From the sequence record PP496441.1: a DNA stretch of 64,000 bases. One strand, given 5' to 3'. Below, piece by piece: positions 13,235 to 17,322 of the stretch. Both the position numbers and the translations under genes were made by a program. Every line of letters starts with the position of its first letter. Position 1 is the first letter of the stretch. A model generated the notes under the pieces. The model saw only the letters and a program-made list of their open reading frames with translations. It was not told the origin of the DNA and did no database searches.

Positions 13235-13525
13235 TTACTCGACCGATACTTTGACGAAGGTTACGCCGTCGTATTCCCGCAGTCGCTTGGTGAAGGACTC
13301 TGCAACTTCGGCCAACGGCACGAAGATCATGTCGCGGGCCACGGTCTCTACTGCGAAGAAAGACGCATCGGTGCGCACGTATACGCGATTGACCGCTGAT
13401 TTCGAGGACGACTCATCTTCGCACTCCGTACACACGGCAGTCGAAGATCGGAGCGTGATGGTATACGACTTCGTGCCTTCCGGCTCAAGCCCTTGACTAC
13501 TTCCTACCTCTTGGGTATCACTCAT
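13235..13525 (-). CDS. Small hypothetical protein (CxxC)
   Basis: ATG 13525 overlaps the end of recA; contains 'CTEC'. Confidence 0.55.
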   Translation of the reverse strand: MSDTQEVGSSQGLEPEGTKSYTITLRSSTAVCTECEDESSSKSAVNRVYVRTDASFFAVETVARDMIFVPLAEVAESFTKRLREYDGVTFVKVSVE

Positions 13526-15074
13526 CTTCGACTTCCTCTTCTTCCTCATCCAGCCCAGCGCCGGACAAGTGGTTGAAATACAACTCCAGTCCACGGCCCG
13601 AAGAAATCTGTGCGGCCAGCACTTCACGGATGTCGAAGTCTTTCACTTCCCATTCCGCTGTCAGTTCCTTACGCGCCTTGCCTTTGAACAGGACCAGTTG
13701 TTTCAGATCCTCCCACGTCAAGTCCAGCTCAGGGATCTGCTTGCTATCGGCGTGAAGGGTGAACGCCTTCATGTTGCCGGAAAGCTGACCGGTCATCCGC
13801 AGGTAGTACCACGTATCCCAGACAGGATCGAAGCCACGACCTTTACCGGTGGCGTCGCTGATCCACAAGCGCTGCCAGATTTCAAGGTTGTCAACCCCGT
13901 ACTTGTTCTTGATCGCCTTCATGTTGATGAAGCGGTAGGTATCCGTACCGGATGCACCAACGCTCGGCTCTTCCATCGTGGCGCCAGTGGCCGAGATGAA
14001 GTCCGGACAAACGCGAGGGGTCTGCATGATCCGGGCGCCCGTGGCGTGCTTGATCGCCATACCGCCAGGTTCGTAGTTCGGGTTGCCCATTCTCATACCC
14101 GGATTCTGACGAATCTGGTTAATCGACACCACGGTAGCCATCTTCTTACGGAGTCGGCCCCACACCTTCTTGATGTGTTTGGAGTGCATGCGCGCATCCA
14201 GAGCCATACCCCGGCTACCATCACCGTCTTCCCCTTCGTCTTCCTCGGTGGTCATCGAGGCGATGGAGTCGAGCAGGATCAGGCACTGCATCATGCCGCC
14301 GTTGGGCGACTTCATCCGCAGCTTGCCCTTGTAGATGGTGTACTTGCCCTTGAACTTGCTCATGTTCTCTTTGGTGCGGTCATACAGCAGATACCACTCG
14401 CCGTTGATATGCACCTTGTCGGGCAGCTGTTTCAGGATCGACGACATCACCTTGTAGAACTTCTCGCCCGAAGATTCGTTGTAGTAACGAATGCGAGGCG
14501 GGATGATGTAGTTACCTTTGTCGTCCTTCACGCCGAACATACGCTTCATGCTGATCTTGATGCCTTGAGCTTCGAGCATGTTGACGATGTAGTCTTCGGC
14601 ACCGGTGTTCTCATAGTCCCACCAAAAGGACATAGGAACGCCAGCCAAACAGATGGAACCCAACCACGACATCAGGTTGGTGGACTTGCCCGAGCCTTCT
14701 GGCCCTGAGAAGTTGTACCAGCCGCCGGGATAGATACCACCCGCCAGCATGAGATCGGTGCACAGCATCCCCGTGGACACTCGCCCTTCCCGGAGGATCT
14801 CCAAGTCCGATACGCCTTGGACGATGTTGAAGTGTTCCTCCACCTTGTCAATCATGGCGGTGACGCCCATCATGTCAAGGATTTCGTCTACCATGTCTTC
14901 GCGGGACTTGGCAGGTGGTTCAGCTTTTGCAGCGGCTGCTTTGTTGGCCCCACGCTTCGCGGGTACCTTGGCGTCCTCGATCAGCTTTTCCGCAAGTGCG
15001 CTGACCTTTTTCTTGGTTGCTACCGTCGCAGTCTTGACGGGTTTAGCTTTAGCTCTGGTAGTGGCTGCTGCCAT
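13518..15074 (-). CDS. recA: RecA/UvsX-like recombinase
   Basis: 'VSTGMLCTDLMLAGGIYPGG', Walker A 'GPEGSGKST', Walker B 'LLDSIA', 'SINQIR', 'PGGMAIKH'. Confidence 0.9.
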   Translation of the reverse strand: MAAATTRAKAKPVKTATVATKKKVSALAEKLIEDAKVPAKRGANKAAAAKAEPPAKSREDMVDEILDMMGVTAMIDKVEEHFNIVQGVSDLEILREGRVSTGMLCTDLMLAGGIYPGGWYNFSGPEGSGKSTNLMSWLGSICLAGVPMSFWWDYENTGAEDYIVNMLEAQGIKISMKRMFGVKDDKGNYIIPPRIRYYNESSGEKFYKVMSSILKQLPDKVHINGEWYLLYDRTKENMSKFKGKYTIYKGKLRMKSPNGGMMQCLILLDSIASMTTEEDEGEDGDGSRGMALDARMHSKHIKKVWGRLRKKMATVVSINQIRQNPGMRMGNPNYEPGGMAIKHATGARIMQTPRVCPDFISATGATMEEPSVGASGTDTYRFINMKAIKNKYGVDNLEIWQRLWISDATGKGRGFDPVWDTWYYLRMTGQLSGNMKAFTLHADSKQIPELDLTWEDLKQLVLFKGKARKELTAEWEVKDFDIREVLAAQISSGRGLELYFNHLSGAGLDEEEEEVEDE

Positions 15075-15093: not shown

Positions 15094-15138
15094 AAATAAA
15101 AATGGGGCATCGACCAGCGAACCGGCAGATGCCCCATT
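15094..15138 (-). terminator. Intrinsic terminator
   Basis: AATGGGGCATC...GATGCCCCATT stem followed by a T tract on the minus strand. Confidence 0.8.
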
Positions 15139-15331
15139 AGGGTTGCGCAACAAGTCACCTGGACGACTTGCGACGCTTCGCTTTGACCGTACTCACCGCC
15201 TTGAAGCCGGGCTTATTGTAGTCCGGTCTGGCATCGGCGGCGAGGTTGAACAACCCCCCGCTGCTCGGGTCAAAGCCTTTGGCGGATCGGCCCTTTGGCT
15301 TACCGCCGCCGGACTTACCGCCGGCCTGCAG

Positions 15332-16135
15332 TCACTCGATGTCGAGTTCGATCTTCAGCTTTTTGGCCGCTTTGACGATCTTGTCCTTGCCCGCTTCGAC
15401 AACTTTCTCGACGATGGCGTCGGTGTCGTCCTTGCGGCCGATGGTGATCTTCAGCGCTTTGGCCAGCGACTTCAGTTCGTCTTCGTCCAGCTCTTCGAGG
15501 GCGTCTTGGAGTTCTTCTTCCTCCTCCTCTTCCTCCTCGTTTTCTTCTTCCTCTTCTTCGCCGTCGCCCAGTTCGATTTCCAGCTCTTCAGCTGCGTCAC
15601 GAACGTCGTCTTCGTCTTCTTCGAGGATCAGCGCGATGATCGCGTCTTCGTCGTCTTTCTTGCCGACTTTGATTTCCAGCTCTTTGGCCAGCGCTTTGAG
15701 GTCTTTCAGGGAAACTTCACCGAGTTCGGCTTCGAGGTCGCCTTCCTCTTTTTCGTCTTCCTCTTCCTCTTCCTCCTCGTTTTCTTCTTCCTCTTCTTCG
15801 GATTCCTCCAGTTCGAGGTCGATGTCCAACGCGTCGGCCGCGTCTTCGATGTCCGACTGGGACGCCGCTTCGGCCAGAGCTTCGGCCATGGCTTCTTCGT
15901 CAGCGCCCTTGGCGAACTTGACCTTCAGCTTCTTGCCCAGCTGCTTCAGCTCGTCTTCGTCCAGATCGGCCAGCGCTTCGATCAGTGCTTCCTTGTCGTC
16001 GCCCTTTTCACCGCCGCCTTCTTCGTCCAGCTCTTCCGCCAGTTCAGCGATTTCGGCGAATGCTGCCTTGGCCTTTTTGTCCTTGGTCGCTTCTGCTGCT
16101 GCTTCGGCCAGTTCGATGATTTTTTCAACAGACAT
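15332..16135 (-). CDS. Highly acidic protein with three helical repeats (Rho-N/HeH-like) joined by poly-Glu linkers; possible readthrough extension to 15155
   Basis: Three copies of 'L.ELDEDELK.LAK.LKI..GKKDD..AI...I.E'; duplicated E-tract DNA. Confidence 0.8.
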   Translation of the reverse strand: MSVEKIIELAEAAAEATKDKKAKAAFAEIAELAEELDEEGGGEKGDDKEALIEALADLDEDELKQLGKKLKVKFAKGADEEAMAEALAEAASQSDIEDAADALDIDLELEESEEEEEENEEEEEEEDEKEEGDLEAELGEVSLKDLKALAKELEIKVGKKDDEDAIIALILEEDEDDVRDAAEELEIELGDGEEEEEENEEEEEEEEELQDALEELDEDELKSLAKALKITIGRKDDTDAIVEKVVEAGKDKIVKAAKKLKIELDIE

Positions 16136-16233
16136 GGTACATCCTCTTTACGGGTAGGGTGCCAACTAAGGCTCTTTAATCAACGGGGCGCCGTTTGGCT
16201 CACCCCGTTATACGAATGATTTACAGCGGTCTT

Positions 16234-17322
16234 TCAGCGACGACTTGAACGCGAGGATCTTGTCGACGTTTTCTCTTTGTCGCGGCTGGTACGGCTGCTG
16301 CGTTCCGACCGGCTCGACGTTGATTTACCGGACTTCTCCGGCTTATCCGCTTTGGCTTTGGTCTTCTCGCGGCGGGAAGTACGCTCGGGCTTCTCTTCAC
16401 GGCTGCTGCTACGCTTGCTGCCTCGCAGTGGACGATCCGATTCACGCTTTCGCTTGCTGCCCCGGTCGAGATCCTTACCGGCCTTCCCTTCTTCTTCCTC
16501 GACGTCCTCAGCATCAGGAGCCTTGGATTCCAAACTTGCCACTTCCTTTACAGCATCTGCGTAGGACATTGGCTGGTCGAGATTACCGAGGATGTCCCAC
16601 TGCAGATACTTCTGCTCGGTACGGGACAGCGGAGTATGGCCTGTGCTGGAGTCCAGCTGCACGTCATACATATCCGACGCCGACTTCGCGTCTTTGTCGA
16701 AGGACACCAGAATGTCACGACCGAACTCGGGGTCACCCAGCGGCATGATCTGCACGCCCTGCTTGGTTTTAACCTTGTTGGTGTCTTCCAGCTTCTTGAT
16801 CTTGCCAGCGATACGGTCAGTAACCCGCATGACGCGAACCGGAGTCCACGAGGCGCTGTTGATGTTGTCCACGAAGCCGGTCTTCTTCTCGTTGGCCGAG
16901 GGCTCGGGGACACGCTTCGGCTCGCTGTCTTGCAGTTCCCGCACGATGACCGGTACGTAGTAGTACTTCTTGGTCTGCTTGGGGTTGCTGATTTCGGCGA
17001 ACGGGCAGTCAATGGTGGTGTCGAAGGTATCCGCGTCCCGGTCGAAGTTCAACGGGGTATGCGAGATATCGAACTCACCCTTCGGCGTAACGATCTTGAT
17101 CGAGTACACCACATCTGGAATCGGATCACCGACGATACGCACAGCGATGAAAGCACCACCTGGCGGGTATTCGATCATCTTCACTTTCTTGTTGAAGTAC
17201 ACCCGCTTGCCGCCGGTCTGGCCAGCATTGGTCGCACCGAAACCTTTACGAGCTGGGGCAGCACCAACGCTACCACCTCCGCCAGTACGGCTACGACCGG
17301 TTCTTGCACTGTCACGTGCCAT
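16234..17322 (-). CDS. gp32-like single-stranded DNA-binding protein with an RS/RE-rich basic tail
   Basis: Core pattern 'DCP...YY.PVIVR...VRV...DP..GRDI...YDV...PL' typical of phage gp32-like SSBs; adjacent to the recombinase. Confidence 0.7.
   Translation of the reverse strand: MARDSARTGRSRTGGGGSVGAAPARKGFGATNAGQTGGKRVYFNKKVKMIEYPPGGAFIAVRIVGDPIPDVVYSIKIVTPKGEFDISHTPLNFDRDADTFDTTIDCPFAEISNPKQTKKYYYVPVIVRELQDSEPKRVPEPSANEKKTGFVDNINSASWTPVRVMRVTDRIAGKIKKLEDTNKVKTKQGVQIMPLGDPEFGRDILVSFDKDAKSASDMYDVQLDSSTGHTPLSRTEQKYLQWDILGNLDQPMSYADAVKEVASLESKAPDAEDVEEEEGKAGKDLDRGSKRKRESDRPLRGSKRSSSREEKPERTSRREKTKAKADKPEKSGKSTSSRSERSSRTSRDKEKTSTRSSRSSRR

Follow-up and report, generated by a model that had tools for sequence, protein, structure and literature searches.

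A putative leaky UGA and a conserved basic extension of an acidic protein in Pseudomonas phage vB_PpuM-Pori-4

Does the gene for an acidic protein in the Pseudomonas putida phage vB_PpuM-Pori-4 end at its first stop codon, or do some ribosomes continue into the open frame that follows? The gene, Pori4_00098, lies on the minus strand of a 64,000-nucleotide stretch of sequence record PP496441.1 (the window), in which position x corresponds to position x + 62,000 of the record. Its annotated coding sequence, including the TGA stop, spans 15332–16135 (-). An earlier sequence-only reading of the window had noted that the same frame stays open for 58 codons beyond this TGA, to a second TGA just before a terminator, and had proposed that readthrough of the first UGA probably appends a basic tail to the acidic protein, giving two isoforms, the longer with a tail that might bind DNA or self-associate. 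The coordinates and translation of the extension proved exact (Table 1), and the proposal of two isoforms gains support from a TGA that is conserved and a tail that is under selection. We consider it likely that the acidic gene and the following 58 codons form one coding unit, split by a deliberately leaky UGA that undergoes programmed readthrough.

Over 3.9 kb surrounding the site, the window is 100% identical to Pori-4 (PP496441.1; 202,632 bp; host P. putida), and eight sibling phages are 93–98% identical to Pori-4 across the same 3.9 kb. Pori-4 and its siblings are cluster G3 jumbo myoviruses of the CEPEST collection (PMC7616413). When the 58-residue tail was compared with 2.3 Gb of phage DNA by tblastn, non-self matches were found only in the Vibrio coralliilyticus phages GR11A and GR7B, at E values of about 8–9. 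In both phages, the match falls in an unannotated gap that separates an acidic repeat gene from recA, and it is in the reading frame of the acidic gene, whose stop is TGA. The gene order in GR11A and GR7B (sigma factor, SSB-like gene, acidic gene, gap, RecA) is the same as in Pori-4, where the minus strand carries a sigma factor, two small genes, SSB, the acidic gene, a 257-nt unannotated gap and a UvsX-like recombinase. The segment between the acidic gene and uvsX/recA is unannotated in all eleven GenBank records, i.e., those of the nine P. putida phages, GR11A and GR7B. Two metagenome contigs, L022 and L023, were found via UvsX homologues in a large protein collection. In L022 (UvsX 53% and SSB 39% identical), the TGA of the acidic gene is followed by 79 in-frame codons, and in L023 (UvsX 49% identical and intein-bearing) by 41. 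Both contigs have the layout SSB, acidic gene, TGA, in-frame tail, stop, terminator, RecA. A hairpin and T run just past the second stop also occur in GR11A (L010), L011, L022 and L023, and the extension ends there in every case.

The tail-bearing set comprises 13 sequences from four deeply diverged lineages: the nine P. putida phages, GR11A with GR7B, L022, and L023. TGA was found at the site in all 13, with no sense codon and no other stop in any of them. Among the nine P. putida phages, which are 93–100% identical, the TGA, the open frame and the second stop are kept throughout. In the AT-rich loci (GR11A, GR7B, L022 and L023), 3 of 25 neighbouring genes end in TGA, while the acidic gene ends in TGA in all four; in L022 and L023 it is the sole TGA-terminated gene of the locus. 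The other stops are one substitution away from TGA and synonymous divergence (dS) is saturated, yet neither is observed at the site. The base that follows the TGA (+4) is C, A or G, depending on the lineage, and never T; in Pori-4, T is the commonest base after TGA stops (31 of 82). A T after the TGA is reported to reduce read-through in bacteria (PMC5289835). The weak TGA-C context emphasized by the earlier reading is present in Pori-4, but the C is not what is conserved. In two related lineages that lack a tail, L024 (UvsX 46% identical) and L025 (42%), the stop of the acidic gene is TAA and lies right at the terminator.

The tails themselves are 58, 50, 44, 79 and 41 codons long, and all are open. 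Pairwise BLASTP related the tails of Pori-4 and GR7B (E = 9e-8), L023 and GR7B (E = 7e-12), and Pori-4 and L022 (E = 0.012). Two alignments were made, A3 with the tails of Pori-4, Peetri, GR11A and GR7B, and A7 with seven tails. In the four-way alignment A3, 16 of 58 columns are invariant, with 11 invariant columns among the 22 of residues 20–41 (the tool's listing for this part is P22, S24, G25, G26, F28, N29, A31, D33, A34, D37, N39 and P41). The residues invariant across A7 are the Gly-Gly pair G25 G26, A34, and the lysines K50 and K55. In all lineages, an acidic body with an isoelectric point (pI) of 4.0–4.4 is followed by a tail with a pI of 9.8–11.2. The Pori-4 tail is predicted to be disordered and without regular structure.

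The pattern of substitution is that of a protein-coding sequence. Among the nine siblings, 13 of the 174 tail columns vary, seven of them at third codon positions. The tails of Pori-4 and Peetri differ by five synonymous and three non-synonymous changes, a ratio of non-synonymous to synonymous divergence (dN/dS) of 0.18, and the proteins are 97% identical in the tail and 87% in the body; this comparison has low power, but is suggestive of selection on the tail. Between GR11A and GR7B, dN/dS in the tail is 0.17 (dN 0.22; dS 1.3, which is saturated), the differences at codon positions 1, 2 and 3 number 9, 5 and 17, and protein identity is 77% in the tail and 60% in the acidic body. By our own arithmetic from the GC values of the lineages, the chance of an open frame in all four is about 1e-5. 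These sequence comparisons show that, in four deep lineages, the tail is a conserved coding segment on which purifying selection acts in the same reading frame as in the acidic body. The two properties of relatives that the sequence-only reading had tied to readthrough, an in-frame TGA that is conserved and synonymous-biased conservation past it, were both found, and the tails are homologous across lineages.

Codon usage in Pori-4 is in line with this. As had been noted from the sequence, the segment has gene-like GC-ending codons: the GC fraction at third positions is 0.79 and the codon-usage log-odds score 0.344, near the mean of 0.364 for chunks of real Pori-4 genes. The remaining five frames all have negative scores, and a score as high as that of the segment occurs in only 5.6% of off-frame chunks taken from real genes. 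Within each locus, no gap is longer than the one that follows the acidic gene, and the tail occupies this gap as far as the terminator. Neighbouring genes have 0–27 open codons past their stops, barring run-on into the next gene. A genome-wide null distribution of post-stop open lengths was tried and was unusable, as many long values reflect a next gene in the same frame. One such place is the Pori-4 portal gene, which also stops at TGA-C and is followed in the same frame, past an open 24-nt gap, by its successor (L016 5233–5262, PP496441.1); it looks ordinary because the successor has a GGAG-type ribosome-binding site (RBS) and an ATG.

If the tail is translated, it could in principle be a small protein in its own right and no C-terminal extension of the acidic protein, with ribosomes terminating at the TGA and then re-initiating, or starting at a non-canonical codon. 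Proteins of 30–50 residues are common in phages, and the tail of GR11A carries an in-frame ATG at codon 11 behind an AAGGG run, and that of GR7B a GTG at codon 9. Start codons are indeed present in the tails of GR11A, GR7B and L022, but their positions differ, and no start position is common to the lineages. In Pori-4 there is no in-frame ATG, GTG or TTG ahead of codon 27 and no Shine–Dalgarno-like run by eye, which upholds the earlier statement that the segment has no RBS or start of its own. None of the three codons occurs ahead of the conserved motif in the Pori-4 group, or anywhere in the L023 tail. Moreover, the Gly/Lys/Asn-rich character of the tail begins right at the first codon past the TGA in every lineage, and a separate protein would leave the constant TGA as upstream stop unexplained. 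We regard this explanation as unlikely.

Stop-codon recoding occurs in other large phages, and the UGA might instead be decoded efficiently, by a suppressor tRNA, a phage-induced change in release factor or a late change of code, so that the extended form would be the main product at some stage. The observation that speaks for this is a single tRNA-like gene shared by GR11A and GR7B, with compensatory changes in its stems and a conserved 17-nt loop replacing the anticodon loop. However, that loop has no UCA triplet, and the 202,632-bp genome of Pori-4 is free of tRNA and tRNA-like genes. In Pori-4, TGA ends 82 of 193 (42%) long open reading frames (ORFs), and the frames past the stops of neighbouring genes close within 0–27 codons. 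Efficient decoding is therefore quite unlikely in our view. Frameshifting would be superfluous, since both segments are in the same frame.

The tRNA-like gene deserves description in its own right. It is located at L033 19743–19826 (MT366761.1 69743–69826) in GR11A, where it is annotated as tRNA-Cys, and at L036 301–384 (MT366760.1 111562–111645) in GR7B, where it is unannotated, and it is the sole gene of its kind in either phage. The Rfam tRNA model matches it with 56 bits, with 17 nt standing in for the anticodon loop. In six stem pairs, both bases differ between the two phages and the pairing is preserved, while the 17-nt loop is almost invariant. ARAGORN could assign no anticodon to the GR7B gene.

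It is also conceivable that the segment is untranslated, being either the decaying remnant of a C-terminus after an old nonsense mutation, or a conserved non-coding 3' untranslated region or small-RNA element that is open by chance. The chance of 58 open codons is 0.11 with the base composition of the window and 0.19 with that of the segment itself. An open frame is thus expected by chance in 11–19% of cases, making it weak evidence alone, and the comparative evidence carries the case. Furthermore, the nine siblings show high conservation over the whole interval from the acidic gene to UvsX, and in the terminator as well. When the Pseudomonas lineage is compared with the Vibrio and metagenomic ones, on the other hand, conservation is at the level of protein without conservation of nucleotides, the dN/dS values given above come with an excess of third-position changes, the frame is open in all four lineages despite lengths of 41 to 79 codons, and the segment folds no better than shuffled sequences. 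An untranslated segment is very unlikely. Lastly, it is scarcely credible that the UGA encodes selenocysteine, through a downstream selenocysteine insertion sequence (SECIS) hairpin and the host SelB system: UGA is the selenocysteine codon and some downstream hairpin can be drawn in L010 and L022 (z about -1.6), but there is no hairpin of common position or shape (z 0 to -1.7) and no Rfam match, no relative has cysteine at the site (tail-bearing ones all have TGA and tail-less ones simply end) where selenocysteine/cysteine pairs are usual, and the site is predicted to be flanked by the poly-acidic end of the body and the Gly/Lys linker, and not to belong to a folded redox site.

This leaves programmed readthrough as the reading that we prefer, and several observations weigh against it. 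Our knowledge of readthrough at this site comes from sequence. No stimulatory RNA structure was found: folds of six sequences gave no shared or significant hairpin (z 0 to -1.7), and Rfam had no match in the region. Nor was there a shared nucleotide context beyond UGA with no U next. The second stop of the Pseudomonas group is again TGA. The bodies of Pori-4 and GR11A could not be aligned by BLASTP (E = 9.5), so the Vibrio genes are taken as orthologues on the basis of synteny, architecture and the tail. The odd tRNA-like gene of GR11A and GR7B counts here as well. The paper describing the P. putida phages (PMC7616413) mentions neither the acidic gene nor recoding. Finally, only four tail-bearing lineages are known, and scans of IMG/VR with UvsX alignments or proteins yielded no others. 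Further searches for the tail gave the same picture: tblastn with the GR7B and L022 tails returned no additional phage records, and a degenerate DNA pattern of the tail motif had no match in IMG/VR and two chance matches in metagenomes, on the bacterial contigs L020 and L021. In the more distant UvsX relatives PaBG, HRDY3, NCTB, JA13, L029, L030 and L031, SSB or an unrelated small gene adjoins RecA, and no tail was found. A word-indexed search with a profile of the acidic protein was swamped by low-complexity words.

The matter of RNA structure bears directly on how leaky the stop might be. The sequence-only reading had proposed a GC-rich stem downstream of the TGA as a stimulator, and this part of it did not hold. 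The supposed arms share a direct repeat and are not reverse complements, the minimum-energy fold has only 5–6 bp there, and folds of 76–91 nt around the Pori-4 stop gave z = -0.18 and -0.39 relative to shuffled sequences. The element is altered in Peetri and has no counterpart in the other lineages. Since neither a conserved stimulatory structure nor a conserved context was found, the level of readthrough may be only the basal leak of the host. The RNA-phage paradigm of readthrough works without RNA structure.

Table 1. Positions in the window of the stop codons, the in-frame extension and the flanking features of the acidic gene.
Feature	Coordinates	Strand	Basis and remarks
SSB, upstream neighbour	16234..17322	-	GenBank annotation; phrog_15004, E 8.8e-34; long basic C-terminal tail
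Shine–Dalgarno-like AAGAGGA of acidic gene	16142..16148	-	6 nt 5' of its ATG; read from sequence
Acidic protein body, Pori4_00098, annotated 'hypothetical protein'	15335..16135	-	ATG 16133–16135; 267 codons; ORF list, GenBank
First stop TGA, +4 C, proposed leaky	15332..15334	-	same in nine sibling phages; TGA at equivalent place in GR11A, GR7B, L022 and L023
58-codon in-frame extension	15158..15331	-	pI ~11.2; 14 K+R, 3 D+E, 10 G; predicted disordered
Gly/Lys-rich linker, extension residues 1–19	15275..15331	-	alignments A3 and A7
Conserved linear motif, extension residues 20–41	15209..15274	-	alignments A3 and A7
Polybasic C-terminal end, extension residues 50–58	15158..15184	-	Lys/Arg run terminal in every lineage; K50 and K55 invariant in A7
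Second stop TGA	15155..15157	-	TAA in AT-rich lineages; tandem TAA TAA in GR11A and GR7B
Intrinsic-terminator-like hairpin and T run	15094..15138	-	11-bp stem, 16-nt loop; by reading sequence; nearly invariant in nine phages
UvsX/RecA-like recombinase, downstream neighbour	13518..15074	-	Pfam RecA E 6e-15; annotation; ATG 15072–15074

The terminator-like hairpin (15138 to 15101) starts 17 nt past the second stop and ends about 25 nt before the UvsX start; as a predicted terminator, it closes the transcription unit of SSB and the acidic gene ahead of the UvsX gene. The hairpin with its T run was missed by the scan tool because its loop is longer than 8 nt. A further GC-rich hairpin, without a clear T run, was seen by eye at about 16182–16209 (-), within the 98 nt that separate the SSB stop from the RBS of the acidic gene. 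On the opposite strand, an ORF of 358 codons, 15143–16219 (+), spans the acidic gene and the tail and is annotated in no record; it is the stop-free antisense of a GAA/GAG-rich gene, and its codon-usage score over the tail is negative.

Several features of the neighbouring genes were also recorded. The C-terminus of the Pori-4 SSB is a long basic tail rich in Ser, Arg and Lys, where an acidic tip would be. The SSBs of PaBG, HRDY3, NCTB, JA13 and GR11A have C-termini with alternating acidic and basic blocks, and in the first four of these phages the SSB gene directly adjoins RecA, without a separate acidic gene. In L029 (1–103), the protein 5' of RecA ends in an acidic stretch and Ile-Pro-Phe, a conventional-looking SSB tail tip, and there is neither an acidic gene nor an extension. 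Several UvsX/RecA homologues of this clade carry inteins with LAGLIDADG homing-endonuclease domains (L023 453–3962; P0006, P0011, P0025), and in L023 the N-terminal part of UvsX was split off by the gene caller as a separate ORF of 272 aa.

The acidic body to which the tail would be added has 267 residues, of which 107 are Asp or Glu and 33 Lys or Arg, and a pI of about 4.05. The AlphaFold2 model (mean predicted local distance difference test score, pLDDT, 79) has an N-terminal helical hairpin and three four-helix (helix-helix-loop-helix-helix) modules, with disordered poly-Glu linkers between them. Pfam gave only sub-threshold matches to the body, to Fan1_SAP (13.3 bits vs. a cutoff of 27) and DUF7440, and remote relatives of the body had SAP and Rho_N matches just under the cutoff. 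The model fits these sub-threshold matches of the SAP/Rho_N type, consistent with modules of a SAP/HeH-like nature. No family was found above threshold for body or tail in Pfam or PHROGs, and none by PDB sequence profile; Foldseek of the body model against the PDB returned no significant fold (E > 1). The body of Pori-4 aligns with that of L022 (E = 1e-7).

Among 1.84 billion representatives, a full hidden Markov model search picked out 21 proteins with acidic SAP/HeH-like repeats, none of which has the tail motif. The only full-length look-alike, P0032, lies in another gene context, without a gap after the gene. Several of the 21 are fused to an N-terminal DUF669 domain (P0045, P0043, P0037, P0029), which by analogy suggests that the acidic module may work with a DNA-binding partner. 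The Pori-4 body resembles acidic SSB C-terminal tails and the fusions of DUF669 with acidic SAP/HeH repeats (P0045, P0043, P0037) in its acidic repeat-plus-linker make-up, and its gene is adjacent to that of SSB. In contrast to the DUF669 fusions, the Pori-4 module is a separate protein, and the tail motif is in none of the fusions, so the likeness in function would be one of analogy.

The readthrough model can be put as follows. Most ribosomes would stop at the first TGA, producing the 267-aa acidic SAP/HeH-repeat protein. A minority would decode the UGA with a near-cognate host tRNA, possibly tRNA-Trp by analogy with the RNA coliphage, and would continue to the second stop, giving a protein of about 326 aa; we infer that the UGA is bypassed in this way, and that the extended form is a minor fraction. 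The added tail, predicted to be disordered, would begin with a Gly/Lys linker, continue with a conserved motif some 20 residues long and close with a run rich in Lys and Arg. More tentatively, the motif may be a linear docking peptide and the polybasic end a nucleic-acid anchor, which together would hold a minor fraction of the acidic protein on DNA, or attach it to a partner in replication or recombination. A tether to the replication and recombination machinery is proposed because the gene sits between SSB and UvsX.

A more specific version, which we consider a long shot, is that the UGA acts as a dosing device. A few percent of an abundant, SSB-associated acidic protein would receive the docking peptide and the anchor and would seed or localize assemblies on DNA, with the phage tRNA-like RNA fixing the level in the Vibrio lineages. 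If so, a double-stranded DNA (dsDNA) phage would itself encode, in that RNA, a site-directed modulator of how a stop codon is decoded.

Known systems provide parallels to the preferred model of programmed readthrough. For the Q-beta A1 protein, Table 1 of PMC7026636 lists a UGA leak of about 5%. As in Q-beta A1, the Pori-4 UGA would stand in frame between a major product and a C-terminally extended minor product, with no phage suppressor gene, and in both the ratio presumably depends on how well a near-cognate host tRNA competes with release factor 2. The settings are different: Q-beta is a 4-kb single-stranded RNA phage and A1 a virion protein, whereas Pori-4 is a 200-kb dsDNA myovirus and the gene looks non-structural, in a replication and recombination block. 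The Q-beta A1 extension is a folded domain and that of Pori-4 would be a short disordered tail, a likeness of device, not of sequence. Bacillus subtilis sacB, the bacterial readthrough example in the same table (PMC7026636, Table 1), likewise has a stop that is read through in bacterial-type translation with a change in the properties of the protein, but it is a cellular gene, for which the tabulated entry carries no evidence of a deeply conserved extension.

In dsDNA phages, the programmed -1 frameshift in the tail assembly chaperones (G/GT) and other frameshifts are documented (PMC5009743). The G/GT frameshift resembles the Pori-4 arrangement in that one mRNA of the same kind of virus gives a short and a C-terminally extended protein in a fixed ratio. 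G/GT requires a shift of frame at a slippery site; in Pori-4 the second segment is in the same frame, the stop would be decoded, and no slippery site is needed. There are also stop-codon-recoded phages, in which TGA or TAG is reassigned genome-wide with the help of suppressor tRNAs. These share with Pori-4 a stop that is read as sense in a large phage, but in Pori-4 TGA is an ordinary stop, no tRNA is encoded, and a single site is concerned.

Programmed readthrough of stop codons is well established for RNA viruses. For bacterial systems, the list in a recent review (PMC7026636) comes down essentially to the coat extension of the RNA coliphages and one Bacillus gene, and we found no case in a tailed dsDNA phage in the reviews and full-text literature searched. 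The device appears to be of the known Q-beta A1 kind, in a setting that appears undescribed: a non-virion gene of a dsDNA jumbo phage, with a short disordered extension, in phages of two host genera.

If the model is correct, large phages use readthrough besides frameshifting to make an extended form of a protein. The Pori-4 site and its relatives would offer a natural, structure-free UGA context in which leak levels could be studied in two hosts other than E. coli, and would flag a class of coding sequence that is missed by gene callers. The tail itself would be a short conserved peptide, probably docking on a replication or recombination partner of these phages.

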